Part shown: positions 28,312 to 54,725 of the stretch, piece by piece
How the letters are laid out: every line of letters starts with the position of its first letter
How positions within the stretch are numbered: the first letter of the stretch is position 1
Source of the DNA: Cyanophora paradoxa CCMP329
Taxonomy: Eukaryota; Plantae; Glaucophyta
Length of the DNA stretch: 64,000 bases
Assembly (NCBI GenBank): GCA_004431415.1
Contig: QPMI01000148.1
Location: 41,782 to 105,781 of the forward strand
Direction: 5' to 3'
Position numbers and translations under genes: made by a program
Notes under the pieces: model-generated
What the model was told of the DNA's origin: nothing
The model's input: the letters and a program-made list of their open reading frames with translations, nothing else
Database searches by the model: none

Positions 28312-28954
28312 CGCCAACGCCGCGCCGCCAACCTTCAGGAGCGGCGGCTTAGCTGCGCGCGGACTGGACGCTTCAGAGACTCCTACAAGAAGCAGCGCAC
28401 TCACTACGCAAGCGGGGTCTCCTGCTCAGAGGGCCGGTTGCGGGCGTCCTCGATTAGGCTCGCAAGCTGTCCCGTCACGTCGCATGCAAGCAGGCGGCCA
28501 TGAGATCTCAAACTTCCGAGATCACTCCGTCGGGCGTGTATACACCACACACGCGCGTACTCGCTCCGCCCGCAATTTCGCTGAGCGTTGAGCCGCTACC
28601 GCAGCCTCTGATTTGCAGGTCGGGCTGGCTTTGCTCAATTCAAGCAAGTGGCCTCTATTGCTGGGATGACGATCTCCTGCCGCCGGTGCTCCGCGTGAAA
28701 GTTGATGCAGCGTTAGTAAATGACTGTACCCTGGCGCTTCGTTCGCAGCTTCGGTTTTGGTCGTAGCAGGTGCGGAGGCTCGCTCGCTCGACCCACTAGC
28801 TCGCTCGAACAGATCCTTGCGCCGAGCAGCCAGCGCTTGCTTCGAGCCGCCAGCGCCAGGGGCCCCTGCTTGATTCCGCCCTGGGCCCCGCGGTGGCGGT
28901 GGCGAGGGCGCGCGCTCCCCGCGGCGCCCTTCTGCCGCTGACCGTCTCGCAGGC

Positions 28955-29990
28955 ATGGGCAGGGGCTGGATCCAGGCAGAGGGGAAGCTGGACCTGACGT
29001 ACGCGGGGCGAACGGAGTGGCCGGCGGCGGAGATCGCGCAAGCGGGACCGGAGAACATCCGCGTGCTCAACCTCGACGGGAACAGGCTCTTGCGTATCCC
29101 GGGCGCCGAGCTCGCCAAGCGAAGGAGAGGCTTTGGTTGCAGGACAACCGGCTTTCGGCGTTGCCGTCGGAGATCGGCCTCCTCGTCGCCCTGCAGAAGC
29201 TGATCGTGAGTGACAACCAGCTGACGGCGCTGCCGCCGGAGATCGGCCGCCTCGCCGCCCTGAAGGAGTTGTGTATCAACGGCAACCCCGTCGTGCTCTC
29301 GTTGCCGGAGTCCGTCCGGCGCGCCGTCAACAACAACTCCAATGTCGGCGACTCTGCTGGGGAAGCCCAGTGCGCCACCGTCGTGCCCTACCTCCGCTCC
29401 CTTCCCGTCCCCGCCCCCGCGGTGCGCTCCGCCGTGCGCGCCGCCCCCGCGCGCCGCCCCTCACTGCCCACCGCAGCCCGCCCCGCAACCCCCCGCCGCC
29501 CCGCCCGTCCCGCACCCCCCTGCCGCCTTCGCCCCTCCGGCCCCAGGTCCTCCCCCCCCTTCACTCCACCCGCCATCCCGACGCGGGCCGCAGCGGGAGG
29601 CGCCGCGGACGCTCCCCGGCCCCTGAAGGCGGTGGCGGGGCAGCTGGAGGCGGCGGCCGTGCGCCTGCGGGAGGAGGCGCGGGCCGCCGCCCTCGCCTCG
29701 GCGAGGGTGGAGGCCCTCGCGGCGGAGCGGGCGGAGGCGCGGGCGGAGCTCGAGGCGGCGGCGCAGCGCGAGCGGCGGGCGGCGGCGGAGGCGGCGGGAC
29801 TCCGTGGGCGGCTGGCGGAGGCGGAGGCCGCGCGTCTCCGGGCCGACGAGCGGCTGGCGCTGTACGAGGGCGGCAGCGCCGGTGGCGCGCCCGGCGGCCG
29901 GCCCTGGGGCGAGGCGGAGCTCGCGGCGGCGGCCGAGCGGCTGAAGGCGGCCCTGGCGCGCGTGGAGGAGCTGCGGATCGCTGCTGCGGA
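28955..29990 (+). pseudogene. LRR array copy A: LRR-coiled coil, frameshifted, RING deleted
   Basis: MGRGWIQAEGKLDL...IPGAELAK, then a frameshifting deletion near 29120 relative to paralogues; LRRs continue in another frame; coiled coil nearly identical to copy B; near 29980 the sequence jumps to the shared 3' region and skips the RING exons. Confidence 0.8.
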
Positions 29991-29995
29991 TCCTG

Positions 29996-30766
29996 GCGGC
30001 GGCGCCACGCGTCGCAGCTCCAAACTCTTTGCTGCGCGGCGCCGCGAGTCGCAGCTCCGGTTCTGTTTACGGGCTCAGCCGTGTACGCGCACCCTCGCGC
30101 CGACCGTTTCTCTCTATAGCTAGATCTGTGCTGCGCATGCAGCCTTCATTCTTAGCCCAACCCCTATAGCTACGCGCATCCTCGCGCCGGCTGCGTGCTG
30201 AGCTCCTTTCTGCAGGCTAGATCAGCGATGGCTAGTGGTCCCAGCCCGCCGCCGCCACTCTTTCCAACCTCATGTCTACGTATACTGCGCAAGTACGTCT
30301 GCAGTTCAAGTTCGAGTAGTTTGATTTCAATGTTCAGAGGTCGAGTTCAATTGCAAGCTGTTATAATGAAGAGCCAATACTAAAAGCTGTTACAATATTA
30401 ATTGAGAGCATTAAGGGTTACGATCGGGGCGCCACGAAGGGCCGTCCCGGCCCCGAAGGCCCTCCGCCCCGAAGGGAAGTCCTCGCCGGAGACACGAGGG
30501 ACTGAACTTCGGAAAGGCGTCCGAAGGAAGGGAGGGGGGGTGGAGGGGGGGGGGGGGTCGGCCCCGAAGGGATCGCTCCTTCGGGAGCCTCGGAGCCCGG
30601 CGCTTCGCCCTACCCCAGCGGACCCCTTCTAGATCTAGAAAGAGGGGGGGCCGAACGGGGGGGTGGGGAGAAAGGGGAATAGAGGATAGTATAGGATAGG
30701 ATACGGGCCCGCTCGCACAACCCGTCGACGTCTACATGAAGGCCCAAGCTATCCCGCTCTTGCTGA
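29996..30766 (+). repeat. Duplicated 3' flank shared by LRR copies A and B (second copy about 34506-35279)
   Basis: Near-identical text from gcgccacgcgtcgcagctcc to ggcccaagctatcccgctcttgctga in both places. Confidence 0.92.
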
Positions 30767-30783
30767 AGTAGAAAACGCAGTAC

Positions 30784-32299
30784 CCCGCTTGTTGACGGTG
30801 TACATCTCTTACCCGTAGACGCGCCGCACCCGCACGGCGATCGATCGCTCGCCATTACCTGTACCCCCGCCGGCCGGGTCAGGGGTGCGGGGGTCAGGGT
30901 GGGGGAAAGCAAAGGAAGGAGGGAAAGGAAACACGCACCTTGGCGCCCTCGAGGCGCGCGTAGAAGCGGAAGATGTTACCTGGGGGGTATGGGTGAGGGG
31001 CCGGGGGATACGAGAGTTGGGAAGAAAGGGGTACGGACTCTTTGTGGAACATGCCTCGCAGCTGCGCCGGAGGGCGAGCAGGGGTACAGGCATCAGGAAC
31101 GGGGATGGAGCTGAAAAGGGGTACGGGCGCTCGCCTCGTTGAGCTCCTCGTGGGGCACGTACCCGGAGCGGGTCCGTACCGTCTCGTCTGCGGGGGTACG
31201 TCGTTGGAGGCGGTCTCGGGGTGCGGGGAGGGGCCGCACCCATGCGAGCGAGGCGCCACATTTCGGGAAAGTCGTCTATGATCTTGCGGATGGGGCGCGC
31301 GCGGCTTGCCCGCCCCGCGCGCCCCGTCTCAGCGATCCCCGCGCGGTGCCGGGCGGGCGGGCGGGCGAGCGCGCCGGGCCTTGACGGGGTCGAGGTCGGC
31401 GAGGCGGCGGGTGCGCGTGCGGACGAGCCCGCCAACGTCCAGCGACTGCCGCGGCTTCACCGCTGCGCCCAAAGCGCTCAGCTTCCGGCGGCGGGACCGG
31501 CGCCTAAGCCTTTGAGCGGGCGGACCGGGGTCCCAGAAGGGGCGGCCGCGGCGGATGTGCTCCACGGCGCTGCCGAAGCTGTGCGAGGCGCGCGGGTCGC
31601 CGTCGTTGTACGCCAGGCACACCAGCAGCTGCTCCGCCCCGTCCTGCGCCGCAGCGATCAGAGCAGGACGGGGAGGGGGCGGCCCGGGGTGGGCCCGGCG
31701 CGGGCCTTCCACATGCGCTTGTTGAGGGCCATTTCGCCGTGGCGCAGGTACAGAGCGCCGTCAGCGTGGGGCGAGCCGGCGCCGCCGCGCAGCCGCATCG
31801 TCCGCAGCAGCCCGATCGACTCTGACACCGCCTGCGACTCTGCCGCCCCGCCCCGCCCCGCCCCGTGAGGCCCCGGCGGCCCCTGCTGGCCCGCAGCTCC
31901 TGGCGGGGCGGGGCGGGGCGGGGCGCACGGGAGCTGCGGCGGCTGAGCTGAGCCGGTGCGGTCGCCGCGCGGAAGTCCGCCGGGAAGGCCGGCAGCGAGA
32001 GGGGCGGCAGGGGCCCGGCGGCCCCGGCGCCTCCGCCGCGCGCGTGAGCGTCAGCGCCGGCGGGGGCGGCGCGGCGGCCGCCCCGCGCGGAAGGGGCTCG
32101 CTGGGGCCGTCGCGGGCGCGGAGAGCGGCGCCGGCGGCGAGTGGGAGGGGGAGGGCGGGAGGGTAGAGCCGGAGGCCGTTGGCGTGGCGGCCGCGGCGGC
32201 GGCGGAGCCCGCGCGGTCGTGGGAGGGGCCCGCGCTCGACGCTGCGACGTCGGCCGACGCCGCCGCACCGTCGGCAGGCGCGTCCTCCTCAGAAGCCAT
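30784..32299 (-). pseudogene. Truncated duplicate (5' exons) of the 18288-28311 gene, unit 2
   Basis: MASEEDAPAD... through IRKIIDDFPEMW and IFRFYARLEGAK to MYTVNKR, after which homology ends. Confidence 0.8.
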
Positions 32300-33150
32300 C
32301 GCCAACGCCGCGCCGCCAACCTTCAGGAGCGGCGGCTTAGCTGCCCGCGGGCTGGGCGCTTCAGGGACGTCTACAAGAAGCAGCGCACTCACCGCGCGAG
32401 GGCTCCTGCTCAGGGCCGGTTGCCGGCGTTCTCGATAAGGCCCGCAAGCTGCCCCGTCACGCCGCGGGCAAGCAGGCGGCCATAAGATCTTCAACTTCCG
32501 AGATCACTCCGTCAGGCGTGTGTACACCACACACGCGCGTACTCGCTCCGTCCGCAAATTCGCTGAGCGTTGAGCCGCTATCGCGGGCCGGGCTGGCTTT
32601 GCTCAATTCAAGCAAGTGGCCTGAGCACTGGCCTCTATTGCTGCGATGACGATCTCCTGCCGCCGGTACTACGCGTGAAAGTTGATGCAGCGGGCAAACG
32701 ACTGTACCCTGGCGCTTCGTTCGCAGCAGCTCGCTGCGGTTCGCAACACTTCGCATGCGCAGCAGCGATATCGCCCGGCCCGCAGGGCCGCCGCGCGCGC
32801 TTGCTCCTCCTAGCGTTCTAGCTCCTAGCGTTCTAGCTCCTAGCGTCAAGCAGCGAGCGCCGGCTTCGAGCGGCCTAGGCCTGCAGAACTCTTGACCGCG
32901 CGGGCTCGGTCGCTTGCTGCGGCAAGGCGATCCATCGAAGGTGAGCGACGCCCTGGCGGGCACATAGGGCGATATCAAGCATCGCCGGGCTCCGGCGCCA
33001 TGACGACGATGATGACGTCGAAGTTGCATCCGAGTAAGTTTCGGGCTGAAGCCCAGAGCGGCCCAGCACTGGGGAACTTCGGAACGCCGATCGAGCGGGG
33101 CGGGGGCGCGCTCCCCGGGGGGCGCTTCTGCCGCTGACCGCCCCGCAGGC

Positions 33151-34483
33151 ATGGTCAGGGGATGGATCCAGGCAGAGGGAAAGCTGGACCTTTGGGGGGA
33201 AGGGCGGACGGAGTGGCCGGCGGCGGAGATCGCGCGGGCGGGGCCGGAGAACATCCGCCACCTCGACCTCGACGGGAACAGGCTCACGAGCATCCCGGGG
33301 GCCGAGCTCGCCAAGCTGAGGAACCTGAAGCAGCTGTGGTTGAATCGCAACCAGCTGGCGGCGCTGCCGCCGGAGATCGACCGCCTCGCCGCCCTGGAAA
33401 AGCTGTGTTTGAACTGCAACCAGCTGACGCGGGCGCTGCCGCCGGAGATCGGCCGCCTCGCCGCCCTGCAAGTGCTGGGCGTGAGCGACAACCTGCTCAC
33501 ATCACTTCCGCCCGAGATCGGCCGCCTCTCTGCCCTGCAGACTCTGTACGTGGACGGCAACCCCGTCGTGGACTCGTGGCCGGAGCCCGTCCGCCGCGCT
33601 GTCGACCGGGGCGATGGTAAAGCCCAGTGCGCCGCCGTCGTGCCCTACCTCCGATCCCTCCTCGCCCCCACCCCCGCGGTGTGCCCCGCTGCGCACGCGG
33701 CTCCTGCTTTCCGCCCCTCACCCCCCGCTGCAGCCCGCCCCCGCCGCCCCGCCCGCCCCGCAACCCCCCGCCGCCCCCGCCCCTCCGGCCCCAGGTCCGT
33801 GCTTCCCCTTTCGGACTTCTCCCTCCAACCTCCCGACGCGGGCCGCAGCGGGAGCCGCCCCCGATTGCCCACTGCCCCTGGAGGCCTTTGCCGGGCAGCT
33901 GGAGGCGGCGGCCGCGCGGCTGCGGGAGGAGGCGCGGGCCGCCGCCCTCGCCGAGGCGCGGGCGGCGGCCCTCGCGGCGGAGCGGGCGGAGGCGCGGGCG
34001 GAGCTCGAGGCGGCGGCGCGGCGGGAGCGGCAGGCGGCGGCCGAGGCGGAGGCGCTGCGCGGGCGGCTGGCGGAGGCGGAGGCCGCGCGTCTCCGGGCCG
34101 ACGAGCGGCTGGCGCTGTACGAGGGCGGCAGCGCCGGTGGCGCGCCCGGCGGCCGGCCCTGGGGCGAGGCGGAGCTCGCGGCGGCGGCCGAGCGGCTGAA
34201 GGCGGCCTTGGCGCGCGTGGATGAGCTGCGGATCGCCGCGCGGGCCGCCGCGCTCAACCGATTCGAGTGCCCGGTGCGCTGCAGTCTGAGCCAGCGGCCG
34301 TTGGCCCGCTCGATGCTGGGCCGGCAGGTGTGCTGGGAGGAGAAGGAGCGGGGGGAGCGGCGGCTCCTGCACCCTTGCGGGCACGTCGTCTGCGCGGCCT
34401 GCGTCCAGCGGCTCGCTGACGGGGCGGGAACGTGTCCCATTTGCCGCGAGCCCTTCGGGGGGTCCGTCCCCATCTACGATTGA
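33151..34483 (+). CDS. LRR array copy B: LRR-coiled coil-C3HC4 RING, putative E3 ubiquitin ligase
   Basis: Five LRR strands in one exon with an LPPEIGRLAAL framework, an Ala/Glu/Arg coiled coil, and spliced RING FECP|VCWEEKERGERRLLHPCGHVVCAACVQRLADGAGTCPICREPFGGSVPIYD*. Confidence 0.88.
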
Positions 34484-35279
34484 GCGCCCTCGCGGTGCGG
34501 CGCCGGCGCGGCGCCACGCGTCGCAGCTCCGAACTCTTTGCTGCGCGGCGCCGCGAGTCGCAGCTCCGGTTCTGTTTGCGGGCTCAGCCGTGTGCGCGCA
34601 CCCTCGCGCCGACCGTTCCTCTCTAGATCTGTGCTGCGCATGCAGCCTTCATTCTTAGCCCCACCCCTATAGCTACGCGCATCCTCGCGCCGGCTGCGTG
34701 CTGTGCTCCTTGCTGCAGGCTAGATTAGCGATGGCTAGTGGTCCCAGCCCGCCGCCGCCACTCTTTCCAACCTCATGTCTACGTATACTGCGCAAGTACG
34801 TCTGCAGTTCAAGTTCGAGTAGTTTGATTTCAATGTTCAGACTCTGAGAGGTCGAGTTCAATTGCAAGCTGTTATAATGAAGAGCCAATACTAAAAGCTG
34901 TTACAATATTAATTGAGAGCATTAAGGGTTACGATCGGGGCGCCACGAAGGGCCGTCCCGGCCCCGAAGGCCCTCCCGCCCCGAAGGGAAGTCCTCGCCG
35001 GAGGCACGAGGGACTGAACTTCGGAAAGGCGTCCGAAGGAGAGGGGGGGGGGGTCGGCCCCGAAGGGATCGCTCCTTTGGGAGCCCGGCGCTGAGCGGAC
35101 CCCTTCTAGATCTAGAAAGAGGGGGGGCCGAACGGGGGAGTGGGTGGGGGGTTTGGGGGGGGGGGGGGGGGGGGGGGGGGAAGAAAGGGGAATAGAGGAT
35201 AGTATAGGATAGGATACGGGCCCGCTCGCACAACCCGTCGACGTCTTCATGAAGGCCCAAGCTATCCCGCTCTTGCTGA

Positions 35280-37165
35280 GATCGGGTACCGGAAAATTTG
35301 CGGCACCGCGACGATTACGGCGGCGCGGCGGGCCAGGCTTCCCTCGTGAGGGTGCCTGATAACGCTGCGTGTCAAGCTGCTCGGAAAGTCGCGGGCCAGC
35401 GCCTCCCGTCCCCTGTAGCCAGAACTAGCTAGACAACCCAGCGCGGCGTCTTTCAAGAGTCGAAACGGAGTCCCTGCCGCCAGTTAGGCCTTCGGACGGA
35501 AATCGGAGCGGCCCGCGACGGCGGAGCGCCCGCCAGCGCCGTCGCGGAAAGACCAGCAACGCAGATCTAAGCACGCATGTCGCCCGCAGATCTAAGCTGG
35601 CGCCGCCGACTTCCTGACAGACAAATCGCGCTCCTGCCTCTTTCAACCCTCACTTTCATCTCTCTTTATGTCTCTCACGCGCGCTGCCGTGCCACAGGCC
35701 GAGCGCACGGAAACGAGCAGGCGCTGGCAAGCGCATCTCCGAGCCGCGGCTCGCCGCCGCAGCCTCCGACACGCGGCCGCCCGGTTCGATCTACAGCCTG
35801 TGAGTTGACCCGCGGTTCGCCTCGCCGCCGCCCGCGCGCTCGCAGATGACGGAGGCGCCACGCCGTCGACGCCGAGCCAAGCTGGACTTCAGCGACGCCC
35901 TCTTGATCGCGGTCGGCGACCTCAACACATGATCGTGATGCTGACTACTACGCTGCCGCAGAGCGCAAGTGCAGGAACGTCCACGACAGCGAGACGTAGA
36001 GCCGTGACACCTCCTCCCCGATGCTAGGGCCCACGGGCGCCCACTCGGACCTCCCCGCTCTTCCCCGAGGTCAGAGCCCACGGGCGCTCGCTCGATCGAC
36101 CCGCGCCGCTTCCCGCCCTCGCCGCCGCCGTCCGCAGCCGTGGAGCGGCCCCCCCGCCCCGCCGCGCCGTGCCCTTCCCGCCCTCGCCGCCTCCGCCCGT
36201 CACCCCGCCCGTCGCCCTTCCCGCCCTCGCCGCGCCCTTCCCTTCCCGCCCTCGCTGCCTCCGCCCGTCGCTGCGGGCCGGGCCCGCCGCGCCGCCGCGC
36301 CCCGCCCTTCCCGCCCTCGCTGCGCCCCGCCCTTCCCGCCATCGCCGCCTCCGCCCGGCGCCGCGGGCCGGCCCCCCCGCCCCGCCGCGCCCCGCCCTTT
36401 CCGCCCTCGCTGCCTCCGCCCGTCGCCGCGGGCCGGGCCCGCCGCGCCGCCTCGCCCCGCCCTTCCGCCCTCGCCGCCGCCGTCCGTAGCCGTGGAGCGC
36501 CCCTCCGCCCCGCCGCGCCGTGCCCTTCCCGCCCTCGCCGCCTCCGCCCGTCGCCCCGCCCGTCGCCCTTCCCGCCCTCGCTGCGCCCCGCCCTTTCCGC
36601 CCTCGCTGCCTCCGCCCGTCGCCGCGGGCCGGGCCCGCCGCGCCGCCGCGCCCCGCCCTTCCCGCCCTCGCCGCCTCCGCCCGGCGCCGCGGGCCGGCCG
36701 GCCCCCCGCCCGCCGCGCCCCGCCCCTCGCCGCCTCCGCCCGTCGCCCCGCCCGTCGCCCTTCCCGCCCTCGCCGCGCCCCGCCCTTCCCGCCCTCGCTG
36801 CCTCCGCCCGGCGCCGCGGGCCGGCCCCCCGCCGCCGCGCCCCGCCCTTCCCGCCCTCGCTGCGCCCCGCCCTTCCCGCCCTCGCTGCCTCCGCCCGTCG
36901 CCGCGGGCCGGGCCCGCCGCGCCGCCGCGCCCCGCCCTTCCCGCCCTCGCCGCCTCCGCCCGGCGCCGCGGGCCGGCCCCCCCGCCCCGCCGCGCCCCGC
37001 CCCTCGCCGCCTCCGCCCGTCGCCCCGCCCGTCGCCCTTCCCGCCCTCGCCGCGCCCCGCCCTTTCCGCCCTCGCTGCCTCCGCCCGTCGCCGCGGGCCG
37101 GGCCCGCCGCGCCGCCTCGCCCCGCCCTTCCCGCCCTCGCCGCCGCCGTCCGTAGCCGTGGAGCG

Positions 37166-37196
<31 letters not shown>

Positions 37197-37683
37197 CCCC
37201 GCCCCGCCGTGCCCTTCCCGCCCTCGCCGCCTCCGCCCGTCGCCCCGCCCGTCGCCCTTCCCGCCCTCGCTGCGCCCCGCCCTTTCCGCCCTCGCTGCCT
37301 CCGCCCGTCGCCGCGGGCCGGGCCCGCCGCGCCGCCGCGCCCCGCCCTTCCCGCCCTCGCCGCCTCCGCCCGGCGCCGCGGGCCGGCCCCCCGCCCGCCG
37401 CGCCCCGCCCTTCCCACCCTCGCCGCTGCCGCCCGTCGCGGCGGGCCCCCCGCCCCGCCGCGGCCCGCCCCTCCCCCTAGCTACCTCGTAGTTCCTGCCA
37501 TAGCACCGCCTAACGTTAGCCCCACCCGATGATCACTGACATGCAGACAACCAACACACTTAGGCAAACACCAAACACAATTCTTTCCATATCCCTAGAA
37601 TATTCCGCCGAGTGGCCCATGTCCGCCGGTTGGATCCTGTGTTCGAATCCGAAACATTGCCCACATGGGCTTTTGAAAAAAAA
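35280..37683 (+). mobile_element. 2.4-kb non-coding insertion with 16-bp TSD, internal VNTR and A tail
   Basis: atcccgctcttgctga at 35264-35279 and 37684-37699; A8 tail at 37676-37683; the paralogous empty site with one copy of the motif is at 30751-30766. Confidence 0.9.
36100..37470. repeat. C-rich VNTR inside the 35280-37683 insertion
   Basis: Irregular reiteration of gcccttcccgccctcgc(c/t)gcctccgcccg and cgccgcgggccg subunits; the long Pro/Arg ORFs here are artefacts. Confidence 0.9.
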
Positions 37684-37716
37684 ATCCCGCTCTTGCTGAA
37701 GTAGAAAACGCAGTAC

Positions 37717-39232
37717 CCCGCTTGTTGACGGTGTACATCTCTTACCCGTAGACGCGCCGCACCCGCACGGCGATCGATCGCTCGCCATTACCTGTACCCC
37801 CGCCGGCCGGGTCAGGGGTGCGGGGGTCAGGGTGGGGGAAAGCAAAGGAAGGAGGGAAAGGAAACACGCACCTTGGCGCCCTCGAGGCGCGCGTAGAAGC
37901 GGAAGATGTTATCTGGGGGGTATGGGTGAGGGGCCGGGGGATACGAGAGTTGGGAAGAAAGGGGTACGGACTCTTTGTGGAACATGCCTCGCAGCTGCGC
38001 CGGAGGGCGAGCAGGGGTACAGGCATCAGGGGTAGTGATGGAGCTAGAGGGGGTACGGGTGATCGCCTCGTTGAGTTCCTCGTGGGGCACGAACCCCGAG
38101 CGCGCCCTCACCGTCTCGTCTGTGCGGGGTACCAGCGGTCACGGAGTACGGGAACGGGCCGCACCCATGCGAGCGAGGTGCCACATTTCGGGGAAGTCGT
38201 CTATGATCTTGCGGATGGGGCGCGCGCGGCCTGCCCGCCCCGCGCGCCCCGCCTCAGTTATCCCCGCGCGGTGCCGAGCGGGCGGGCAGACAGCCGCGCC
38301 GGGCCTTGACGGGGTCGAGGTCGGCGAGGCGGCGGGTGCGCGTGCGGACGAGCCCGCCAACGTTCACCGCTGCGCCGAAAGCGCTCAGCGGCCGGCGGCG
38401 GGCCCGGCGCCTAAGCCTTTGAGCGGGCGGACCGGGGTCCCAGAAGGGGCGGTCGCGGCGGATATGCTCCACGGCGCTGCCGAAGCTGTGCGAGGCGCGC
38501 GGGTCGCCGTCGTTGTACGCCAGGCACACCAGCAGCTGCTCCGCCCCGTCCTGCGCCACGGCGCTCAGAGCAGGGCGGGGACGGAGCGGCCCGGGGCGGG
38601 CCCGGCGCGGGCCTTCCACATGCGCTTGTTGAGGGCCATTCCGCCGTGGCGCAGGTACAGGGCGCCGTCGGCGTGCGGCGAGCCGGCGCCGCCGCGCAGC
38701 CGCATCGTCCGCAGCAGCCCGATCGACTCCGACACCGCCTGCGACTCTGCCGCCCCGCCCCGCCCCGCCCCGTGAGGCCCCGGCGGCCCCTGCTGGCCCG
38801 CGGCTCCTGGCGGGGCGCCGGGCGGGGCGGGGGGGGCGGGCGGGGGCGCACGGGAGCTGCGGCGGCTGAGCTGCGCCGGTGCGGTCGCCGCGCGGAAGTC
38901 CGCCGGGAAGGCCGGCAGCGAGAGGGGCGGCGGCGGCCCCAGCGGCCCCGGCGCCTCCGCCGCCCGCGTGAGCGTCAGCGCCGGCGGGGGCGGCGCGGGG
39001 GCAGCCCCCGCGCGGAAGGGGCTCGCCGGGCCGTCGCGGGCGCGGAGGGCGGCGCCGGCGGCTCGGGCGGCGCGTGGGAGGAGGCGGGCGGGAGGGCAGC
39101 GGCGGAGGCCGTTGGCGCGTCGGCGGCGGCGGCGGCGGCGCCCGCGCGGTCGTGGGAGGGGCCCGCGCTCGACGGAGCGAGGTCGATCGACGCCGCCACA
39201 CCGTCAGCTGGGGCGGCCTCCTCTGATGCCAT
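37717..39232 (-). pseudogene. Truncated duplicate of the 18288-28311 gene, unit 3
   Basis: MASEEAAPAD... with the same exon series and the same breakpoint as unit 2. Confidence 0.8.
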
Positions 39233-40067
39233 CGCCAACGCCGCGCCGCCGGCCAACCTGCAGAAGCGGCGGCTTAGCTACGCGCGGGCTGCAGCTGGGC
39301 GCTTCAGGGACGTCTGCAAGAAGCAGCGCACTCACCACGCAAGCGGGGCCTCCTGCTCAGGGCCGGTTGCGGGCGTCCTCGATAAGGCTCGCAACCTGCC
39401 CCGTCATGCCGAGGGCAAGCAGGCGGCCATGGGATCTCCAACTTCCGAGAACTCTGGCAGCTGGTGTACGCTCACGCGTGCTAGGTCCGCCCGCAATTCG
39501 CCGGGTGCCGTCCACGCTGCAGGCTGGCGTGGCCCGGTTCGAGCACGCCGCGTTTCTGCTCTAACGAAGATCTCCTTCCGCCGATGTTCCGCGTGCAAGC
39601 AGACCCCCGCCGTCAGCGCGAGACCGTACCCCGCTCGGAGCCGCCCGTACCCCGCTCATGACCGCTAGTGTGACAAAGGCTGCTGTGTGTCCGGCGCTTT
39701 GTTTGGACGTTCTCTTCGGAGGTAAGCATGGCCGAGCTCTTTCTGTTTCCGAGCAGCAGGCGAGCTGTGACGCTGTGACGGCCAGGTGACCACTGACCAG
39801 CCGCAGACTGTAGCCGGTAGCCGCAGACCACTGTCGCGAGTCAGCAGTCAACAGTTAACGTACGTAGGCGATCCGTCGACGGTGCGCGAGTCAGCAGCGC
39901 GACGCTGGGCGGGCGCAAAGCCTGCTTCCATTAGTTGCCCCTGCAATCTCCCCATAGGCCGCCGTACGAGTTCGCTCCCCCGAGCCGCGACTCGGGACCC
40001 GCCGGGCGGGGCGGGGGCTCGCTAGCGCTCCCCGCTGCGCGCTTCTGCCGCTGACAGCTCCGCAGGC

Positions 40068-42595
40068 ATGGGCAAGGGGTGGATCCCCGCCGTAGGGAAG
40101 CTGGACCTTGGGGGGGAGGGGCGGACGGAGTGGCCGGCGGCGGAGATCGCGGCGGCGGGGCCGGAGACATCCGCGTGCTCGACCTCAGCTTCAACAAGCT
40201 CACGCGCATCCCGGGGGCCGAGCTCGCCAAGCTGACGAACCTGGAGAAGCTGTACACGACCAGGAACCAGCTTCGAGCGCTGCCGCTGGAGATCGGTCAC
40301 CTTGCCGCCCTGAAGGAGCTGCGCGTGAGCGGCAACAAGCTGGCGGCGCTGCCGCCGGAGATCGGCCGACTTACGGCCTTGAAGCAGCTGTATGCGCACA
40401 GCAACCAGCTGACAGCGCTGCCGCTGGAGATCGGCCGCCTCGGCGCTCTGGAGCTGCTGCGTGCGGATGGAAACCCCGTCGTGGACTCGTGGCCCGAGCC
40501 CGTCCGTCGCACCGTCAACGACAACAAAGGACCGTGGGGCTCAGACGATGCTGCTGCCGCTTCCGGGAAAGCGCAGTGCACCGCTGTCGTGCCCTACCTC
40601 CGCTCCCTCTCCGCCCCCGCCCCCGCGGTGCGCCGCGGCGACTCGCCCCCGCGCATCGCTCCTCACCCCCGCCGCAGGCCCTTCCAGCCCCCTCGCCCGA
40701 TTTCTGCCCTCCTGCCGCACTGGTTCCTTCGGTCGCCTCGTCCGCCACCGCGATGCCAGCTGCCGCCGCCGAGGTACTCCGTGCCCCGCCGCCCCTGCGC
40801 CCCGTTTCTCATCCCTCGCCGCAGCCCGCCCCAACCGTGCCCCCTGCACCCGCAACCCCGGCCCGCCCCGGCCGCCCGGCGTCCCGGCACGCTCTGCGCT
40901 CTCCAGCTTCCCCAGCCACCCAAGTCGCCCCGGCTCCTGGTCCTGCTGATGCGAGCCCGTCAGCGCCTGCTGCCGCCGCCGCCCACCACCAGCAGGACCA
41001 CGGGCCAGCCCCTCAGCAGGCACCCGGGCAGCCTTCTCCGGCGGGCGACGTGCGCTCGTCCCCGAACCCTCCGACCCCTCTGGCCCCCGGTCCGTCCTCC
41101 CCACTCATGCTCTCTGGCTTCAGCCTGCGACGCTGCCCGCCTCGCCAGCCGCACAGCAGCCCCAGGTCCCCAAAAAGGCACCTCCCCGGCTTCCCTCTGC
41201 TTCGGCCGTCCCAGCCCCCTGTCCGCCCTCCCCGCCCGCTTGCCCGCGCTCTGGAGCCTCCGATGCGAGCCCGCCGTGCAGCGCGCCCTCAGCCGGCCGC
41301 CCAGCGTCCCAAGCAGGCGCCGAAGCCGGCGCCCCCGCGGGCCCCCCCGGGGGGCGACGTGCGCTCCTGGAGCGAGGACGACGTCGTCGCGTGGGTCCGC
41401 TCCCGCGGCCAGATCGCCGAGTGCGCCGCGCCGAGCCGCCCAGCCTCGCCCCTTCCAAAGCCTGAGGCGGCGGCAGGTTCGCGGGGGCCTTCCGCTACAC
41501 GAACGGCGTCGGCCTTCTTGCTCTGGGCGACAGCGAGCTCGAGCAGATGGGCGTATCGCACTTCGGCGCACGCCACCGCCTCCTCGCCGAGATCGCCGCC
41601 CTCCGCGGCGGCCAACCCGCGGCCGCTCCCGACAACGGCCCCACTTTGCTCGCCCCCACTTCCCGGCCCCAACGGCCCCTCCCTCCGGGCTACGAGTACC
41701 ACGTCTTGTGCGCATGCATATGGCCTAGGCCACGCGCCTGATAAACTCGCTCGCTAATGGGGCGCAGCATTACGTACCGGCGGTTTCATGGCAAGAACTA
41801 CCTCGCGTCGCTCGTTCACGATGCGTTGGACCATGCCGGGTGCGGCCGCCGGCGCCGGTCCCGCGCCCCGCGCACTGCCCCTGACACGGCAGTAGCTACA
41901 AGGTCTTCCTCGACGTTCGAACGCTGCAGGGCGGCGTCTTCGACTCGAAGATCCTCCAATCCATCCGCGCCTCCTGCGTCGATGGTCCGACTCTGCATTG
42001 GAACCTCTTGCAAAGCTCCTGTGAGCCCGCCACGCGCGCAGTCTTCATCCTCGTGGACGGCACCCTCGAGCGCTGCAAGGAGCTTGACGACTGGTGCGCG
42101 GGCCGTGGCCGGGGGCCGTGGCCGGGGGCCGAGTCGCCTTTTCCTCTCCTCTGACCGCTGGCTGCGCGCAGGGTGCGCCGCGAGATCGCGGAGGCGTGCC
42201 ACCTCGGCAAGGTCGGTCCGCTGCTGCGCCGCATGGCCTGAACTGCCGGCGTCGGACTGACTCTTGCCTCGACCCACGGCCAGGCGATCATCCCCGTGGT
42301 GGACGACCCACAGCAACGCTTCCCGTCAACGGCCGGCCTGCCGCCCGACATGGCGAACTTCCCGCGCCACAACGCCCTCTTCTGGGTGAGCAACATGCAG
42401 GAGGAGTGCGTCGCCCGCCTCTGCCGCCACATCGACGCCGCCGTCGCAAACGTTAAGGTTCGCGTGGACGCTTCTGCTCCGAACCCTGCTGCTGCTGGGC
42501 TGACGCTGCCGCGGCAGCCCTTCGCGTCGCTGCCGGCGCCCCTCCCGCCGCCGGCGCCGGCCGCCGAGAAGAAGAATTCCTGCAGCGTCCAGTAA
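40068..42595 (+). CDS. LRR array copy C: LRR-SAM-TIR (SARM1-like) with C-terminal CaaX; 1-bp frameshift near 40167
   Basis: MGKGWIPAVGKLDL, five LRR strands; SAM DVRSWSEDDVVAWVRSRGQIAEFAGAFRYTNGVGLLALGDSELEQMGVSHFGARHRLLAEIAALR; TIR YHVFITYRRFHGKNYLASLVHDALDHAGYKVFLDVRTLQGGVFDSKILQSI...GTLERCKELDDWVRREIAEACHLGKAIIPVVD...LPPDMANFPRHNALFW; ends KKNSCSVQ*. Confidence 0.85.
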
Positions 42596-43517
42596 CCTGT
42601 CTGGTCTTTCTGACTACTTTATGCGTTTCTATCTGTTTGTTCATTCTTAGAAGACGGAGATGCAAATGTGTGAAAGAGCCCCTACGCAGTTGTAGTTTTC
42701 CTGCAGCTGGTTCACAGCGTTCATGTGCACGTGTGAATTTCGAAGTTCATAGTGTATGATGATTAATATATATTCTTCTGCGAGCTCTGTCAGAAGAGCC
42801 TAGTTTATGGTGCTGCTAGGCGTGACCATACGTGCTGTGCAGCTCTAGCAGGCTGGCGGCGAGAGCGGGCAGAGCTGGTATTCCAGGAGCAAGCACAAGT
42901 ACAGGGTACAAGTGTGTCACCCGGGGTGTGAGCCCGGGAGGGGTACATGAAAAGTAGTGGGGATCCAATCGGCGCACTCAATGCGAGCACTGCGGAGACT
43001 AAGGCCAAGCACTGCGAGTAGCGTGACTCGGGGTGCCGGCTCCTGACGGCACAAAGCCGTGGGGCAATATCTGATATCGATAAAGTGCGACGGTGTGGAC
43101 AGTGACTGGTACTCATGATCAGTGACTAGGCTCGGGCGAAGGCATGCGCAGGGCAGGCAGACGAAGGGGGGCGCCCGCGCCCGCGCCCGCGCCTGGGAAG
43201 GGGGAGCGGAGGAGGCCGGGGCGGGCACGCGCACCTCGGGGGCGGCGAGAGCAGCCGAGAGCCCTCAGACCAGCGATCGCCTTTGCCTGTACCCCCAAGC
43301 GCCTGTCCCGGCCCCGGACGCCTGGGAGCGGCCCGGGCCCGGGTTCCTGGGTCCCTAGGTCGGCCCCGGGTTCGACCCCCCAAGACGCCGCTTGCCGGGC
43401 AGGGGGTAGCCTAGTAGGACGGTGGGCGGGCCCTCTTGGGACCCGCCCCGAACGGCCCGCCGATATAGAGGTCCCAGCTATCCTATCCCGCTCTCACTGA
43501 AGTAAGAAGCGCGGTAC

Positions 43518-45041
43518 CCCGTTTGTCGACGCGCCGTGCCCGGTCCGCGATCGCCTTCACCTGTACCCCCGTCGGCCGTGTCAGAAGCGGGGAGCGACGG
43601 AAGGGGAGGGGTACACGCGCCTTGGCGCCATCGAGGCGCGCGTAGTAGCGGAAGATGTTCCGCACGGGGATGTAGTACCTGGGGGGTACGGGTGAGGGGC
43701 CGGGGGGGGGGAAGAGTTGGCTAGGAAGGGGTACGGACTCTTTGTGGAACATGCCCCGCAGCTGCGCGGGAGGGCGAGCAGGAGTGCAGGAATCAGGGGC
43801 GGGGATGGAGCCGAAAAGGGGTACGGGCGCTCGCCTCGTTGAGCTCCTCGTGGGGCACGTACCCCGAGCGCGTCCTCACCGTCTCGTCTGCCGAGGGGTA
43901 CGGGGTCGGAGGCGATCACGGGGTGCGGGGAGGGGCCGCACCCATGCGAGCGAGGCGCCACATTTCGGGGAAGTCGTCTATGATCTTGCGGATGGGGCGC
44001 GGCCTGCCCGCCCCGCGCGCCCCGCCTCAGTTATCCCCGTGCGGTGCCGAGCGGGCGGGCGGGCGAGTGCACCGAGCTTTGACGGGGTCCAGGTCAGCGA
44101 GGCGGCGGGTGCGCGTGCGGACGAGCCCGCCAAAGTCCAGCGACTGCCGCGGCTTCACCACTGCGCCCAAAGCGCTCAGCGGCCGTCGGCGGGCCCGGCG
44201 GGCGGCGGCGCTCGATCGGCGCCGGTCTAGTCGCTGGGACTGGCGGACCGGGATCCCAGAAGGGGCGGTCGCGACGGATATGCTCCACGGCGCTGCCGAA
44301 GCTGTGCGAGGCGCGCGGGTCGCCGTCGTTGTACGCCAGGCACACCAGCAGCTGCTCCGCCCCGTCCTGCGCCACGGCGCTCGGACCCGGGCGGGGACGG
44401 AGCGGCGCGGGGCGCGCCCGGTGCGGACCTTCCACATGCGCTTGTTGAGGGCCATTTCGCCGTGGCGGAGGTACAGGGCGCCGTCGGCGTGCGTCGAGCC
44501 GGCGCCGCCGCGCAGCCGCATCGTCCGCAGCAGCCCGATCGATTCCGACACCGCCTGCGACTCTGCCGCCCCGCCCCGCCCCGCCCCGTGAGGCCCCGGC
44601 GGCCCCCGCTGGCCCGCGGCTCCTGGCGGGGCGCCGCGGCGGGGCGGGGCGGGGCGGGGCGGGGGCGCACGGGAGCTGCGGCGGCTGAGCTGCGCCGGTG
44701 CGGTCGCCGCGCGGAAGTCCGCCGGGAAGGCCGGCAGCGAGAGGGCGGCGGGGGCCCGGCGGCCCCGGCGCCTCCGCCGCGCGCGTGAGCGTCAGCGCCG
44801 GCGGGGGCGGCGCGGCGGCCGCCCCCGCGCGGAAGGGGCTCGCTGGGGCCGTCGCGGGCGCGGAGGGCGGCGCCGGCGGCGCGTGGGAGGGGGAGGGCGG
44901 GAGGGTAGAGCCGGAGGCCGTTGGCGTGGCGGCCGCGGCGGCGGCGGTGCCCGCGCGGTCGTGGGAGGGGCCCGCGCTCGACGCTGCGACGTCGGCCGAC
45001 GCCGCCGCACCGTCGGCAGGCGCGTCCTCCTCAGAAGCCAT
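43518..45041 (-). pseudogene. Truncated duplicate of the 18288-28311 gene, unit 4
   Basis: MASEEDAPAD... to RNIFRYYARLDGAK/VKAIADRARRVDKR; the last exon lacks the GEEMYTVN segment. Confidence 0.8.
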
Positions 45042-46879
45042 CGCCAACGCCGCGCCGCCAACCTGCAGGAGCGGCGGCTTAGCTGCGCGCGGGCTGGGCG
45101 CTTCAGGGACGTCTACAAGAAGCAGTGCACTCACCGCGCGCGAGGGCTCCTGCTCAGGGCCGTTTGCCGGCGTTCTCGAGGTGGCTAGGCTCGCAAGCTC
45201 TCCCGTCAGGGCAAGGGCACGCAGGCGGCCATAATCTGATCTGATGGGCGGGTGTACGCAACACGGCGGGCGTTCGCGCTCCGCCCGCAATTCGCCGGAC
45301 GTTTGAGCGATCTATATGATCTCTTCCTGCCGGTGTTCCATGTGCAAGCAGATGCAGTGCAAGGAGCTGCCAAGGAGCTGCTACCGGCTGCTGAGGACTG
45401 CTGGTATATACTGCAGCTGTGAGGTTCGACTGAGGGCTTGGAGTGACATGCGCTGGTCGCGAACGCAGAGAAGCCGCGAAGCGGCGAACGAAGTGAGCTC
45501 TACCTGTCTGAATTCGAAGTTCGAGGAGGGTCCCTTTTTTTCGCTAACAAAAACGGGTACAAGATTCACAAAAACTCAATCGAAAGATACGTCGAGCGTC
45601 AGTCCAAAGTCGCCGTCACGGTAGTGTTTTGTGACGCCGTCACGCCCAGGTAATCATTACAAATGCATAAGATTAAGAATGGGCTAGGGCATAGTTTGCA
45701 GCGCAACGCGTTGCATGCGCCAAAGCTTGCGCAATCGGCCTTGGGGAAAGGAGAGGCCCTTAGGTCTGTTGGTATCTTGTCACAAATTTTAGAAAGCGAA
45801 ATTCGTATTTTTGAAGACACCTACTACCCCATTTTAGACCCTGGGGAGCACGATATCGATGGTCCGGCCCGTTTTCCTATGAGAGGCCTCTAATGGGCAG
45901 TAACAGCACCTCGAAAAGCACAGAAAAGCATTTTCCCGGAAAAAAACAGAAAGCGCAAATCACATTGGCCTTCCAAGTCGAAATTTGAAAATTATTAATT
46001 TCAAGAGACCGCACCTCATTCGCTAGCAAATAGTTTCCAAATTAACGGAGCGCCACATGGACGGCCAGCAAATTTGTATGAGACAGGGTCGCAGTGTGCC
46101 ACGATGTGGGATTTAAAAGTATTTGATGCGTTAGTTGAAAGATTATCAAAATAAACAATTTCGACATTTTTTTTTTGAGAGACTACGGTGGGGCGAACCC
46201 CCCGTAGGTAGTGATATTAAAGACAACAAAGCAATCACAAATCAAAGATACAGTAAACTAGCACAAAATATATACAGAATCAAGAGGGATCACGAGAAAG
46301 GACACGATCAGAAGAACGCAAAAGATAAGGAGAACGAGCACGAGGAGAAGGAGTAGAAGAGCTCAAGGGCGTCGATGCAGAAGTACTAGTCACACTAGAA
46401 CGACGAGGAGCACGGGGACGCAGCTTATTAATTATAACGACAGAGGCTTATTAATATTACTGCGAATTAAATTCAAATGATTCATAGATAATTATTAACC
46501 ACCTCCAATTTGGCAAAAAGCGCCGAAAGTCGTTTTAATTTCATTCAGCTGCGCATGCGACGACCAATGGGCCCCTCGGGGCCTGTACTCGGTACAATTG
46601 CGGCCGATTGGGCCCCGCATCGATATCTGTACCCTTGCGGCACAATTCTGTACACAATTCTGTGTACCCTTGCCTAGTGGACCCCCTGTTTCTCCTCCCC
46701 CCTCCCCCGTAACCGCGCGCGGTTGCGGCCGCGGGCGCCGGCCGCGGCCCCCGTTTAAAAACAAAGAGCTGCCACCCTCACGCCGCGAAGCCCCAAGACC
46801 CAAGGCCACTCCTGCTCCGCAGGGACTCGCTTGTTGCAAGCGCCGGAGTCGAGGGAACGTAGAGTTGATGTATCCCCAG

Positions 46880-50693: not shown

Positions 50694-53600
50694 ATGGGCG
50701 GCTGTCGTAGCAAACAGAGGTGGATCCCGGCGGAGGGCAGGCTGTGCCTGGCGTGGGAGGGGCGGACGGAGTGGCCGGCGGCGGAGATCGCGGCGGCGGG
50801 GGCCGAGCTCGCCAAGCTGACGAACCTGGAGGGGCTGTGGTTGAACGGCAACCAGCTTACGGCGCTGCCGCCGGAGATCGGCCGCCTCGCCGCCCTGAAG
50901 GAGCTGTACGTGCACAGCAACCCAGTCGTGGATTCGTGGCCCAAGCCCGTCCGCCGCGCCGTCAACGAGAACACCGGTATGCTGAACAAGAAAAACGGTG
51001 CTGCGCAGTGCGCCGCCGTCGTGGCCTACCTCCGCTCCCTCCCTGCCCCCGCCCCCGCCGCCACGGTGCGCACCGCCGCCCCGCCCCCGCGCCCTGCCCC
51101 TCACCTCCCGCTGCAGCCCGCCCCCGCCGCTTTGAGCGATTCCGCGGCCTCACCCGCCGCCCCGGTGAGGCTCCCCGCCTCCGACCCAACCCCGCGCCCC
51201 TCACCCCTGCCCCGCAGCCCGCTTCCGCCCCGGCCCCCCCGCCGCCCCGGCCCCTCCGCCAACCGGTCCCCGCATCCCCTCTGTTCGCCCCTGTGTCGCC
51301 GGCCCTCTGACGCCTTCCCGTCGTGCAGCGGCGCCCGCCGCTGGAGGCGCGCCCGCCCCCGTACCCGCCTCGGCCACCGCCCGCCCCCGCCCGCCGAAGC
51401 GGTGCGTTCCGCGCCGCCGCGGTGCGTCCCTCTGCGCCTCCTCCCGCGCGCGCCCGCCCCTCACCTCTCCTCGCAGCCCGCCCCCGTGCCCTCGTCAGCC
51501 CAGCGCTCTCCCGCCGCCACGGCCCCTCCAGCCCCCCCCGGTCCGTGGACGCCTTTTCGCGAGCTCTTCTTTTGCCTTCTGGTGCGAGCTCATGTGCAGA
51601 GACCTCGGCGTCACCGGCAGCTTCTCTCGCCACCGTCGCCGTGGCGCCTGCTGCTGCAGCAGCCTCGCCCCCGGCCGCTCTCACCGCCGCCGCCCCGGCC
51701 GCCCCCGCCCCGGCTCCCGGTCCGTCCAGACGCCCCTCCCGCTTCCTTCCTTCGTTCCGATGCTTCCTGCAGCGGTGCCCGCCTCGCCTGCCGCCACCGT
51801 CGCAGCCTCGCCCGCCGCCGCAGCGCCGCCGCCGCAGCAGCCTCGGCCTTCTGCCGCCGCGGTGAGCCGTGTCGCACCGCCTCTACAAAACTCGCCCCTC
51901 ATGATGACCTCCTGCCGCAGCCCGCCCCCGCTGCCTCGGCCCCGCTTCGGCCCCAGAGTTGGGGGTCGTTCCCTGGAGACCGGAAATTTGACCTGTCAGA
52001 AGAGAGGCGGACGGAGTGGCCGGCGGCGGAGATCGCGGCGGCGGGGCCGGAGAACGTCTTGGAGCTCAACCTTGACGGAAACAATCTGTCACGTATCCCT
52101 GGGGCCGAGCTCGCCAAGCTGACGAACCTGGAGAAGCTGTTCTTGAACCGCAACCAGCTGACGGCGCTCCCTCCAGAGATCGGACTTCTCTCCTCCCTGC
52201 GGGAGCTGCTCGTGTTCACCAACAAGCTGATGTCGCTGCCGCCGGAGATCGGCCGCCTCACGGCTCTGAAGCGCCTAAACGTGGCCGACAACCGGCTGAC
52301 ATCGCTCCCTGTCGAAATCGGCAGCATCCCCGCAATGAAAGAGCTGAACGTGAATGGAAATCCTCTCAAGGACATGCCGGAGCTGCGCGGCAAGGATGAC
52401 GAAGCTGCCCTCGCTTACCTCCGCTCCCTCGCCCCCGCCGTGCGCCCCGCCTCGCCGCCCCCACCCTCGCGGCCGACCCTAATTTCCTGCTGCAGCCAGC
52501 CCCCGCTGCCCCGCCCACCCCGCACCCTGCCGCCGCTGCAGCCGTTGGAGCGCGGGACCCGCGGGGCATGCGCATGGCGGACGTGTGCGAGTGGCTGCGG
52601 TCCGTCGAGCTCGGGGACCTCGCCCCGGCCTTCGAGAGGCACCGCGTGGACGGCAAGATGCTGCTGGAGCTGACGGAGGGCGACCTTCAGCGCGAGCTCG
52701 GCGTCGAGTCGGGCCTCGTCCGCCGCCGCGTACTCAAGGAGGCGCGCCCGCCCCCGCCCCGCCGCCCCGCGCCCGGCCCGGCTGAGGCCCCCCCGCCAGA
52801 TCGCTGACCTCGCGAGGGAGCACGGCCTCGCCAGCGCGGCGCCGAGCGCGCCCCGGGCCCGTCCGCAGAGCGCCGCCGCCGGTCGCGTCCCGCCGCTGCC
52901 CCCGGGCTACGAGTTTCACGCCTTGTGCGCCGCCGTGCCCAGTTGAACTTCTTTCGCCCGCCCCTGAGGCCCGCGCAGCATCACGTACCGGCGGCTGGAC
53001 GGGAAGAACCTCCTCGCGTCGCTTGTGCGTGAGGCGTTGGACAAGCTCGGGTGCGGCCACAGGTGCCCGCCTCGCGCCCTGCTGCCCCTGACGCGGCGGA
53101 AGCTACAAGGTCTTCTTCGACCTGCAGACCCTCCAGGGCGGCGTCTTCGACTCGAAGATCCTTGAGAGCCTCCGCCGCTCCTGCTGCGACGGCGCGCCCC
53201 GCCGGCGACCCCTGCCGCGCCCGCCCTCCCGCCACCGCCCCCCCCCCCCCCCCCGCCCCCCCCCCCCCCCTCCCTCTCCCCCCTACCCGCTCTGACGCCC
53301 GTGCGCAGTCTTCGTGCTCACGCCGGGCACTCTCGACCGCTGCTTCGAGGACAAGGCCCCCTCGGCCGCCCTCTCTAACGACTGGTTCCGCCCGCCCGGC
53401 AGCGCCGCCCCCCGCACCTCCCCCGCCGATCGCTGGGCGGGGCGCGACGCAGGGTGCGGAAAGAGATCGCGGAGGGGTGCCGCCTGCGCAAGGCGATCAT
53501 CCCCTTCGTGGACGACCCGGCCCAGCACTTTCCCGCCTGCGACGGCCTCCCCGCCGACATGGCCGCGTTCTCCCGCCACAACGGTCCGCCCCGCGCTCAC

Positions 53601-53839
53601 GTCCGCCCGAGCTTTCAAGTGTCGATCCGCGCGCTGCTGACGCCTTTTCGGCCGCAGCGGTCTTTTTCAACAACATGTACCAGCAGGCAGTCATCGCCCG
53701 CCTCTGCGCCCTCATCGACGCCGCCGTGGCCGACGCCGCCGTCCGCCCTTCCTCTCCCCCTTTCGAGGCGCCCGCTGCCGGCCGCTGACGGGGCGCGCAT
53801 GCGCAGCCGTTCGAGGAGCTGCCGGCCCCCCTCGCGTAG
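50694..53839 (+). CDS. LRR array copy D: N-terminal acylation motif, LRR-linker-LRR-SAM-TIR (SARM1-like)
   Basis: MGGCRSK start; LRR block 1 (two strands); Pro/Ala linker exons; LRR block 2 (five strands, about 51955-52430); SAM MRMADVCEWLRSVELGDLAPAFERHRVDGKMLLELTEGDLQRELGVESGLVRRRVLKE; TIR FHAFITYRRLDGKNLLASLVREALDKLGYKVFFDLQTLQGGVFDSKILESL...VLTPGTLDRCFED...DWVRKEIAEGCRLRKAIIPFVD...LPADMAAF; ends PFEELPAPLA*. Linker splicing not fully resolved. Confidence 0.85.
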
Positions 53840-54725
53840 ACCCGCCCCGCCGCCTCTGAGGCCCCAAGCCCTGCCCAGCCCGGAGCGCCCGCGGCATTCC
53901 ACGTTCGTTCGGAAGTCAGCAGCTAGCTGCAACAGTGGGCAGCGCGTGCAGGCGGCCTATCGAAGCTCAAGATTCGTTGATAGTTCAAAGCGTTTCACTG
54001 CGAAGATGAAATTCGATGTAAATGCATGTGTAGCAGAACGTGGTTCGAAGCTTGAAATCTCAGATACGAGTAACCTGGCCGCTGCCGGCAGGCCCGTGCC
54101 CCCTCGCCCCTTCCATATGCACCCCCCGGCTCCCCGCCACCCCCGTCGCCCCCGCCTCGCCGGCTGCACATGCCCCGGGCCCTCCTCTTTTGCAATGAAA
54201 GGAGCACATATACACATAATAAAAATTTGTAATAATGATAAAAAATGAGAGTACCCCCATCGGGGTGGGCCCGCCCTCTTTGCAACCCTCACCTCTCCGG
54301 ACACACCCCAACCCACCCACTCCGACGCCTTCCCAGCCCTCATTCTCCTCCACCCCTCCGCTATGTCTACTGCCCTCCTCTCCCTCTGGTCTACCTCCCC
54401 TCCATCCAGCAACCGCTAGGTAATATCTAACGTCTAGACCAAGCGATCTTGCAAAAGATATAGCAGTGAATTGAGGCGGGCCCCCAAACGCGCCGGTCTG
54501 CAGAGACCTCCTAGAGCTCTCTATCGGAATAAGCTAGACGTGATTGATGTGTACAGAGAAGCTAACTGCCGAAACGCAATCCAGCTCTAGCTTGAGGTCT
54601 ATCTAGGTGTTAACTGCGTCACCACAATCGAGGTTTCGTCTATTTTGTCTTAAAGAGATCCCTAACCATATTGCTATGTGAAGTTGCGTTTGGAACAAGC
54701 AAAAAAATTGTGATATATACTTCCA

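Follow-up and report, generated by a model that had tools for sequence, protein, structure and literature searches.

The nuclear gene tig00000600_g2281 of the glaucophyte Cyanophora paradoxa, referred to here as copy C, joins an LRR region to a SAM domain, a TIR domain of the SARM1 type and a CaaX-type C terminus. It is a genuine gene whose product, by analogy with SARM1, would probably act as a membrane-tethered, NAD+-cleaving effector. The gene lies on the + strand of the window, by which we mean the whole 64,000-nucleotide stretch of DNA that was analysed, and is represented by two public proteins, P0001 (t1, 580 amino acids; EukProt accession EP00741_Cyanophora_paradoxa_P002351) and P0127 (isoform t2, 585 amino acids). 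Using the LRR part of the stop-free open reading frame 40079-41728 as a query leads to the public model P0001, and both the gene model and its automatic Pfam matches are already public. LRR-SAM-TIR-CaaX is a new architecture around an enzyme domain of a known type; a search of the literature found no paper on TIR, SARM1-like or LRR-TIR genes of Cyanophora or glaucophytes.

We checked the exons of copy C singly against the window and against P0001 and P0127. The model has about 13 exons and 12 introns and gives a product of about 585 residues; the SAM-TIR part of P0001 is identical to the reading of the exons in the window. The coding pieces of the TIR domain (41,690-42,450) are split by GT..AG introns of 56-78 nt, with GTGCG at most donors, and the domain starts a few codons before 41708, within exon 41477..41707. 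An earlier note on this DNA had listed SARM1-like motifs across 41690-42450 and had described a TIR domain split over about six small exons. All of these motifs lie on the + strand where the note had placed them, the HVF|ITYRR motif spans intron 41708-41767, and six exons could be read, all flanked by GT..AG and each mapping onto P0001 and P0127. The tail exon, 42518-42595, lies beyond the end coordinate given there (42450). Downstream of the head, about 1.6 kb of coding exons contain no stop and no frameshift. The features of copy C, with the evidence for each in brackets, are as follows.

40068..40166, + strand: ATG and the conserved head of the family (MGKGWIPA..EGRTEWPAAEIAAAGPE), displaced by one base from the reading frame of the downstream LRR
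40068-40078, + strand: first coding piece in the public model, linked to the LRR exon by the predicted intron 40079-40188
40189..40627, + strand: LRR exon, about four repeats and a conserved cap (Pfam LRR_4, LRR_8 and LRR_14; P0001 residues 5-150)
40678-40773, 40825-41089 and 41149-41220, + strand: Pro/Ala-rich linker in three exons (contig joints; the same exon set as isoform t2, P0127)
41282..41420, + strand: last part of the linker, followed by the first half of SAM (contig joints on both sides; Pfam SAM_1 on P0001)
41477..41707, + strand: second half of the SAM domain, a short linker and the first TIR strand (..YEYHVF) (Pfam SAM_1; joint 41707/41768)
41768..41839, + strand: TIR exon 2 (ITYRR..LASL..) (joints 41707/41768 and 41839/41896)
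41896..41984, + strand: TIR exon 3, with YKVFLDV..LQGGVFDSKILQSI and the BB-loop LQGGVFD (alignment to SARM1; mapping to the public proteins)
42042..42093, + strand: TIR exon 4 (FILVDGTLERCKELDDW), with GTLERC..DDW (protein mapping; joint 42093/42172)
42172..42211, + strand: TIR exon 5 (VRREIAEACHLGK), with VRREI and the GAG Glu codon at 42182-42184 (alignment to DWVHKEI of SARM1)
42284..42457, + strand: TIR exon 6 (AIIPVVDD..LPPDM..WVS..), in which the TIR fold ends (joint 42457/42518; fold model)
42518..42595, + strand: tail exon, with the CaaX-type box CSVQ (codons 42581-42592) and the stop codon TAA (protein mapping; tails of the paralogues)

Searches of the raw window with the TIR domains of mammalian and mite SARM1 (tblastn) matched positions 41873-42433, with E values of 8e-6 and 7e-7, and the best E value outside the two TIR loci of the window was 0.04. 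The match at 41873-42433 needs no splicing model, and the TIR domain at this locus stands far above chance.

Copy C is transcribed and spliced. We surveyed contigs over 39,900-42,800 from three RNA-like runs (X1, X3 and X5, from two studies) and from one DNA-like run (X14). Contigs of the three RNA-like runs contain nine GT..AG joints that fit copy C: in the linker at 40626/40677, 40771/40823 and 41088/41148; in the SAM region and the first part of the TIR domain at 41220/41282, 41420/41477, 41707/41768 and 41839/41896; and in the later TIR domain and tail at 42093/42172 and 42457/42518. Loose contig ends at 42212 and 42277 demonstrate a tenth splice, 42211/42284. RNA-like contigs thus back 10 of the 12 introns of copy C, with an exon set that is that of isoform t2 (P0127), whereas the region is unspliced in the DNA-like run, and this difference establishes transcription and splicing. 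For intron 41985-42041 no joint fits copy C, the sole contig there (about 41982/42041) being mismatched and probably derived from a paralogue, and the joints listed from RNA contigs include none for the predicted intron 40079-40188.

That predicted intron bears on the N terminus of the protein. The ATG at 40068 opens the conserved head of the LRR family; compared with the paralogues, the window is missing one A after 40167 (GAGACATCC in the window, GAGAACATCC in the paralogues and in contigs of four runs), so that the head and the LRR are in different reading frames. Copy C might therefore be a transcribed but decaying copy, in which a one-base deletion after 40167 has uncoupled the head from the body and little or no full-length protein is made. 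The frame of the ATG meets a stop near 40236, the paralogues read GPENIR.. in a single frame at the site of the missing A, and the public model skips the break by means of the 110-nt intron 40079-40188, on which it depends. We nevertheless regard decay as unlikely. The extra A, which would restore the frame, occurs in contigs of all four runs and points to a homopolymer error in the long reads, although these contigs may be from paralogues; moreover, the downstream introns are correctly spliced and the coding exons that follow have stayed open. With the head out of frame and a bypass intron that lacks RNA support, the full-length product of copy C is uncertain, and a functional gene remains the reading that we prefer.

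The assignment of the TIR domain to the SARM1 type, proposed in the earlier note, is supported by sequence matches, by the predicted fold and by phylogeny. On P0001, Pfam recognizes TIR_2 (PF13676) at residues 412-507 (31.6 bits; gathering cut-off, 28) and TIR (PF01582) with 26.0 bits (gathering cut-off, 21.3). In a phmmer search of the PDB the passing matches are confined to SARM1 and C. elegans TIR-1 (19 distinct sequences; best E value, 1e-20), and the next TIR family is represented by grapevine RPV1 (E = 0.22). An AlphaFold model of residues 400-548, built from a 10-sequence alignment, has a pLDDT of 85.5 and a pTM of 0.84; its predicted strands and helices alternate in a beta-alpha, flavodoxin-like arrangement. 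The note had asked whether a structure prediction would depart from the TIR fold; the model is a TIR fold, and in a Foldseek comparison with the PDB ranks 1-36 are all SARM1 or TIR-1 (TM, 0.75-0.88; 32-36% identity). Among the 114 PDB matches at E ≤ 0.001, the best 50 are all TIR-domain structures. When the exons were run one by one, Pfam scored the SAM and LRR exons only and none of the TIR exons, as these are too short alone (13-58 amino acids). An ESM Atlas feature search returned just generic short TIR_2 clusters. We also considered and rejected assignment to a bacterial defence family, for which the PADLOC and NCBIfam matches were weak (ThsB, 2.5e-8; ThcB4, 29 bits where the cut-off is 220).

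The catalytic-type glutamate is intact, as previously noted. DWVRREI aligns with DWVHKEI of SARM1, and its Glu (E488 in P0001 (t1), E493 in P0127; codon GAG at 42182-42184) aligns with E642. LQGGVF aligns with LEAGKF, and the Gly and Phe of the BB loop correspond to G601 and F603 of SARM1. Invariant positions in the alignment of 15 relatives, which come from several lineages, are F, Y and R of the first strand, G and F of the BB loop, and D, R and E of the Glu motif. Relative to SARM1, the loop that precedes DW has three residues fewer. The position of SARM1 H685, marked by structure 6o0u (the H685A mutant of SARM1), is Ser in copy C (WVS on WSH) and varies among its paralogues, and the Picozoa-like relatives described below keep His. 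By analogy with SARM1, NADase activity or production of a cADPR isomer can reasonably be predicted for the TIR domain of copy C.

Two other roles for this domain would not involve cleavage of NAD+. The TIR domain could be a non-catalytic scaffold in the manner of TLR and MyD88, recruiting TIR and SAM proteins of the family and retaining its Glu as a structural relic; the missing equivalent of H685 and the presence of other TIR types in the genome would fit such a role. However, none of the 15 relatives deviates at the Glu, at the Gly of the BB loop or in the WxxxE context, the nearest solved relatives are all active NADases, and adaptor-type TIRs, that of TLR1 for example, score much lower in the Foldseek comparison (TM of about 0.66; 17-19% identity), which together make a scaffold quite improbable. 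Some plant TIRs are reported to act on nucleic acids or make 2',3'-cNMP, and the plant TIRs of RUN1 and RPV1 are the second-best structural class. They resemble copy C much less closely (15-16% identity and TM of 0.6-0.7, compared with 32-36% and 0.75-0.88 for SARM1) and are beyond the reach of the sequence search, and we give very little credence to an activity of this kind in place of NAD+ cleavage.

The preferred reading, a SARM1-like effector, also draws on the rest of the protein, in which the order is LRR, a long Pro/Ala-rich linker, one SAM domain, TIR and a C-terminal CSVQ. Pfam places the LRR at residues 14-100 of P0001 and SAM_1 at residues 318-379 (E = 4e-6, 27.4 bits; cut-off, 23), and exon 41477..41707 alone matches SAM_1 with an E value of 4e-5. 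On P0001 Pfam finds no ARM repeats, the LRR alone lying upstream of the SAM domain, and no NB-ARC or NACHT domain; no second SAM that would form a tandem was found on this protein. Searched alone against the PDB, the SAM domain has no detectable likeness to that of SARM1, its best matches being the polymerising SAMs of tankyrase, DGK-delta and aveugle (E = 0.006-0.03); outside Cyanophora, its nearest matches are Picozoa-like SAMs (E = 3e-6 to 1e-3). CSVQ forms the last four residues and is of the CaaX type but has Ser in place of an aliphatic residue, and the paralogues P0121 and P0053 also end in ..SCSVQ. Such an end makes a putative lipid anchor plausible.

The steps by which copy C may act are modelled on SARM1 and other catalytic TIRs. 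A prenylated CSVQ tail would hold the protein at a membrane, where the LRR would either sense or keep the protein inactive. Self-association of SAM domains would gather the TIR domains, and TIR-TIR assembly would then form an active site in which NAD+ is cleaved using the Glu. The output would be NAD+ depletion or an ADPR-derived signal, serving immunity or cell death.

Word-index homologue searches with the TIR domain returned 9 and 7 proteins, with no SARM1 among them. Given the low sensitivity of these searches, we ran a full profile search, in which a profile of 15 TIRs was compared with 1.84 billion cluster representatives. At E ≤ 0.001 there were 57,687 matching proteins, and a threshold of E ≤ 1e-30 left 2,884, which shows that this TIR class is very large. 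Among the best 150 of the 57,687 are SARM1 of Bos (P0255) and of a mite (P0266), fly sarm1 (P0274), a tir-1-like protein of a crinoid and many proteins whose partner domains are of bacterial type (Ser/Thr kinase, CHASE2, Sel1 and DO-GTPase).

Three features limit the phylogenetic trees: 150 rows are top matches of a profile that was itself derived from sequences of Cyanophora and the Picozoa-like group, the TIR domain is short, and the placement of the outgroup differs between the trees of 159 and 61 rows. In the quick tree (159 rows) the eight Cyanophora TIRs of the SARM1 type form one clade (SH-aLRT, 98). The careful tree (61 rows) recovers the Cyanophora clade (98/93), an animal SARM1 clade (99/95) and a group centred on P0126, a Picozoa SAG protein (99/94). 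These three are joined at 96/91, apart from 34 sampled others, and the comparison with SARM1 that the earlier note had suggested therefore places the TIR domain of copy C with animal SARM1 and Picozoa-like SAM-TIR proteins. An exclusive clade of Cyanophora and SARM1 is absent from the best 61-row tree and is not rejected (AU P = 0.19). Picozoa-like TIRs stand next to animal SARM1 in this tree. Copy C was also considered as a SARM1 orthologue, and this was rejected because it has no ARM repeats, has one SAM domain instead of two and carries a TIR domain that falls outside the animal SARM1 clade.

A SAM profile run on the 159 rows detected the domain in 20, of which 19 belong to the Cyanophora, SARM1 and Picozoa-like groups; the twentieth adjoins these groups, and the remainder has none (0 of 126). 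The near-complete confinement of SAM to three groups suggests that SAM-TIR is a single cassette, either inherited or transferred. SARM1 is usually regarded as an animal protein with a TIR domain of bacterial origin. A TIR atlas preprint (PMC13142454) places SARM1 within a bacterial lineage that has a few protist members, and neither its text nor the supplements covered mention Cyanophora. The SAM-TIR pairing behind an LRR in a glaucophyte, together with the presence of SAM-TIR in a third protist group, raises the question of whether the module is older than animals or has spread among eukaryotes.

Copy C belongs to a lineage-specific gene family whose members stand in tandem. Around it, a shared block roughly 1.4-1.6 kb long is found at about 26,965, 30,983, 37,684 and 43,683, with 63-100% identity between copies, and one such block precedes each LRR-head gene (heads at 28,966, 33,162 and 40,068). 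The gene at 33,162 ends in a RING finger (34,256-34,480; E = 3e-9) whereas copy C ends in SAM-TIR, which shows that tails have been exchanged behind the head: effector tails are swapped behind a duplicated LRR head in a tandem array. Counted from start to start, the tandem segmental units, which occupy 26965-45122, are about 4.0, 6.9 and 5.8 kb apart. A dense array of direct repeats is located at 36061-37487, after the LRR-RING gene and before the shared block that comes next; it consists of 11 overlapping 300-nt copies at spacings of 65, 87 and 190 nt, is about 80% GC and gives translations rich in Pro, Ala and Arg. The window also contains a paralogue with a TIR domain, copy D.

50,694-53,870, + strand: copy D (tig00000600_g2283, P0065), paralogue of copy C
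52893..53716, + strand: TIR domain of copy D, with the Glu of VRKEI intact (comparison with copy C)

The TIR domains of copies C and D are 72% identical over 106 codons, with a dN/dS of about 0.41 for the TIR exons. In copy C, intron 42212-42283 (72 nt, with an in-frame stop) sits between VRREIAEACHLGK and AIIPVVD; copy D has no equivalent intron and reads through at 53480-53505 (..CRLRK|AIIPFVD). The public model of copy D, P0065, seems to lack the YKVFFDLQTLQGGVFDS exon (53104-53190) and has an odd stretch in its place. P0065, P0092 and P0122 form a subfamily that ends in ..LPAPLA and has no CSVQ box.

For the genome, copy C flags a tandem array with swapped effector tails. More tentatively, and with the doubts outweighing the arguments for it, SAM-TIR might represent an old cassette of eukaryotes, for death or immunity, that animal SARM1 shares with picozoan-like protists and glaucophytes. 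The Cyanophora version would be one of several interchangeable tails (SAM-TIR, plain TIR and RING) behind an LRR head that duplicates in tandem arrays, and the products would be lipid-anchored innate-immune receptors without an NLR-type ATPase. Copy C is predicted to be a simple receptor that couples an LRR to an NADase and has neither an NB-ARC nor a NACHT switch, and as such may be useful for studying how TIR enzymes are gated.

Among known systems, the closest in TIR subtype is SARM1/TIR-1 (32-36% identity, E = 1e-20, TM of 0.75-0.88), with which copy C has in common the Glu in DWV..EI, the Gly and Phe of the BB loop, a SYRR-type first strand and a SAM domain directly upstream of TIR. It differs from SARM1 in having an LRR in place of the ARM autoinhibitory domain, one SAM domain rather than two, Ser at the position of H685, a loop before DW that is shorter by three residues, a CaaX tail and a separate clade. 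Picozoa-like proteins, which comprise P0126 of Picozoa sp. COSAG02 and the metagenomic relatives P0131-P0133, P0202, P0206, P0209, P0213 and P0243, share the SAM-TIR order; their TIR domains are 33-38% identical to that of copy C and group with those of Cyanophora and SARM1. In P0126, P0131 and P0132, Pfam detects SAM and TIR alone and no LRR, and P0133 has no match on record; unlike the Cyanophora proteins, this group keeps the His, and it forms its own clade (99/94). Bacterial-type TIR_2 proteins (kinase-TIR, CHASE2-TIR, Sel1-TIR and DO-GTPase-TIR) are 37-44% identical to the TIR domain of copy C but have no SAM domain (0 of 126 rows), carry other sensor domains and lie beyond the 96/91 branch of the 61-row tree. 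The plant TIR-NB-LRR proteins RUN1 and RPV1 are immune receptors that also contain both TIR and LRR, along with a catalytic Glu; their TIR domains are only 15-16% identical to that of copy C, which has no NB-ARC or NACHT domain and carries its LRR first and its TIR last.
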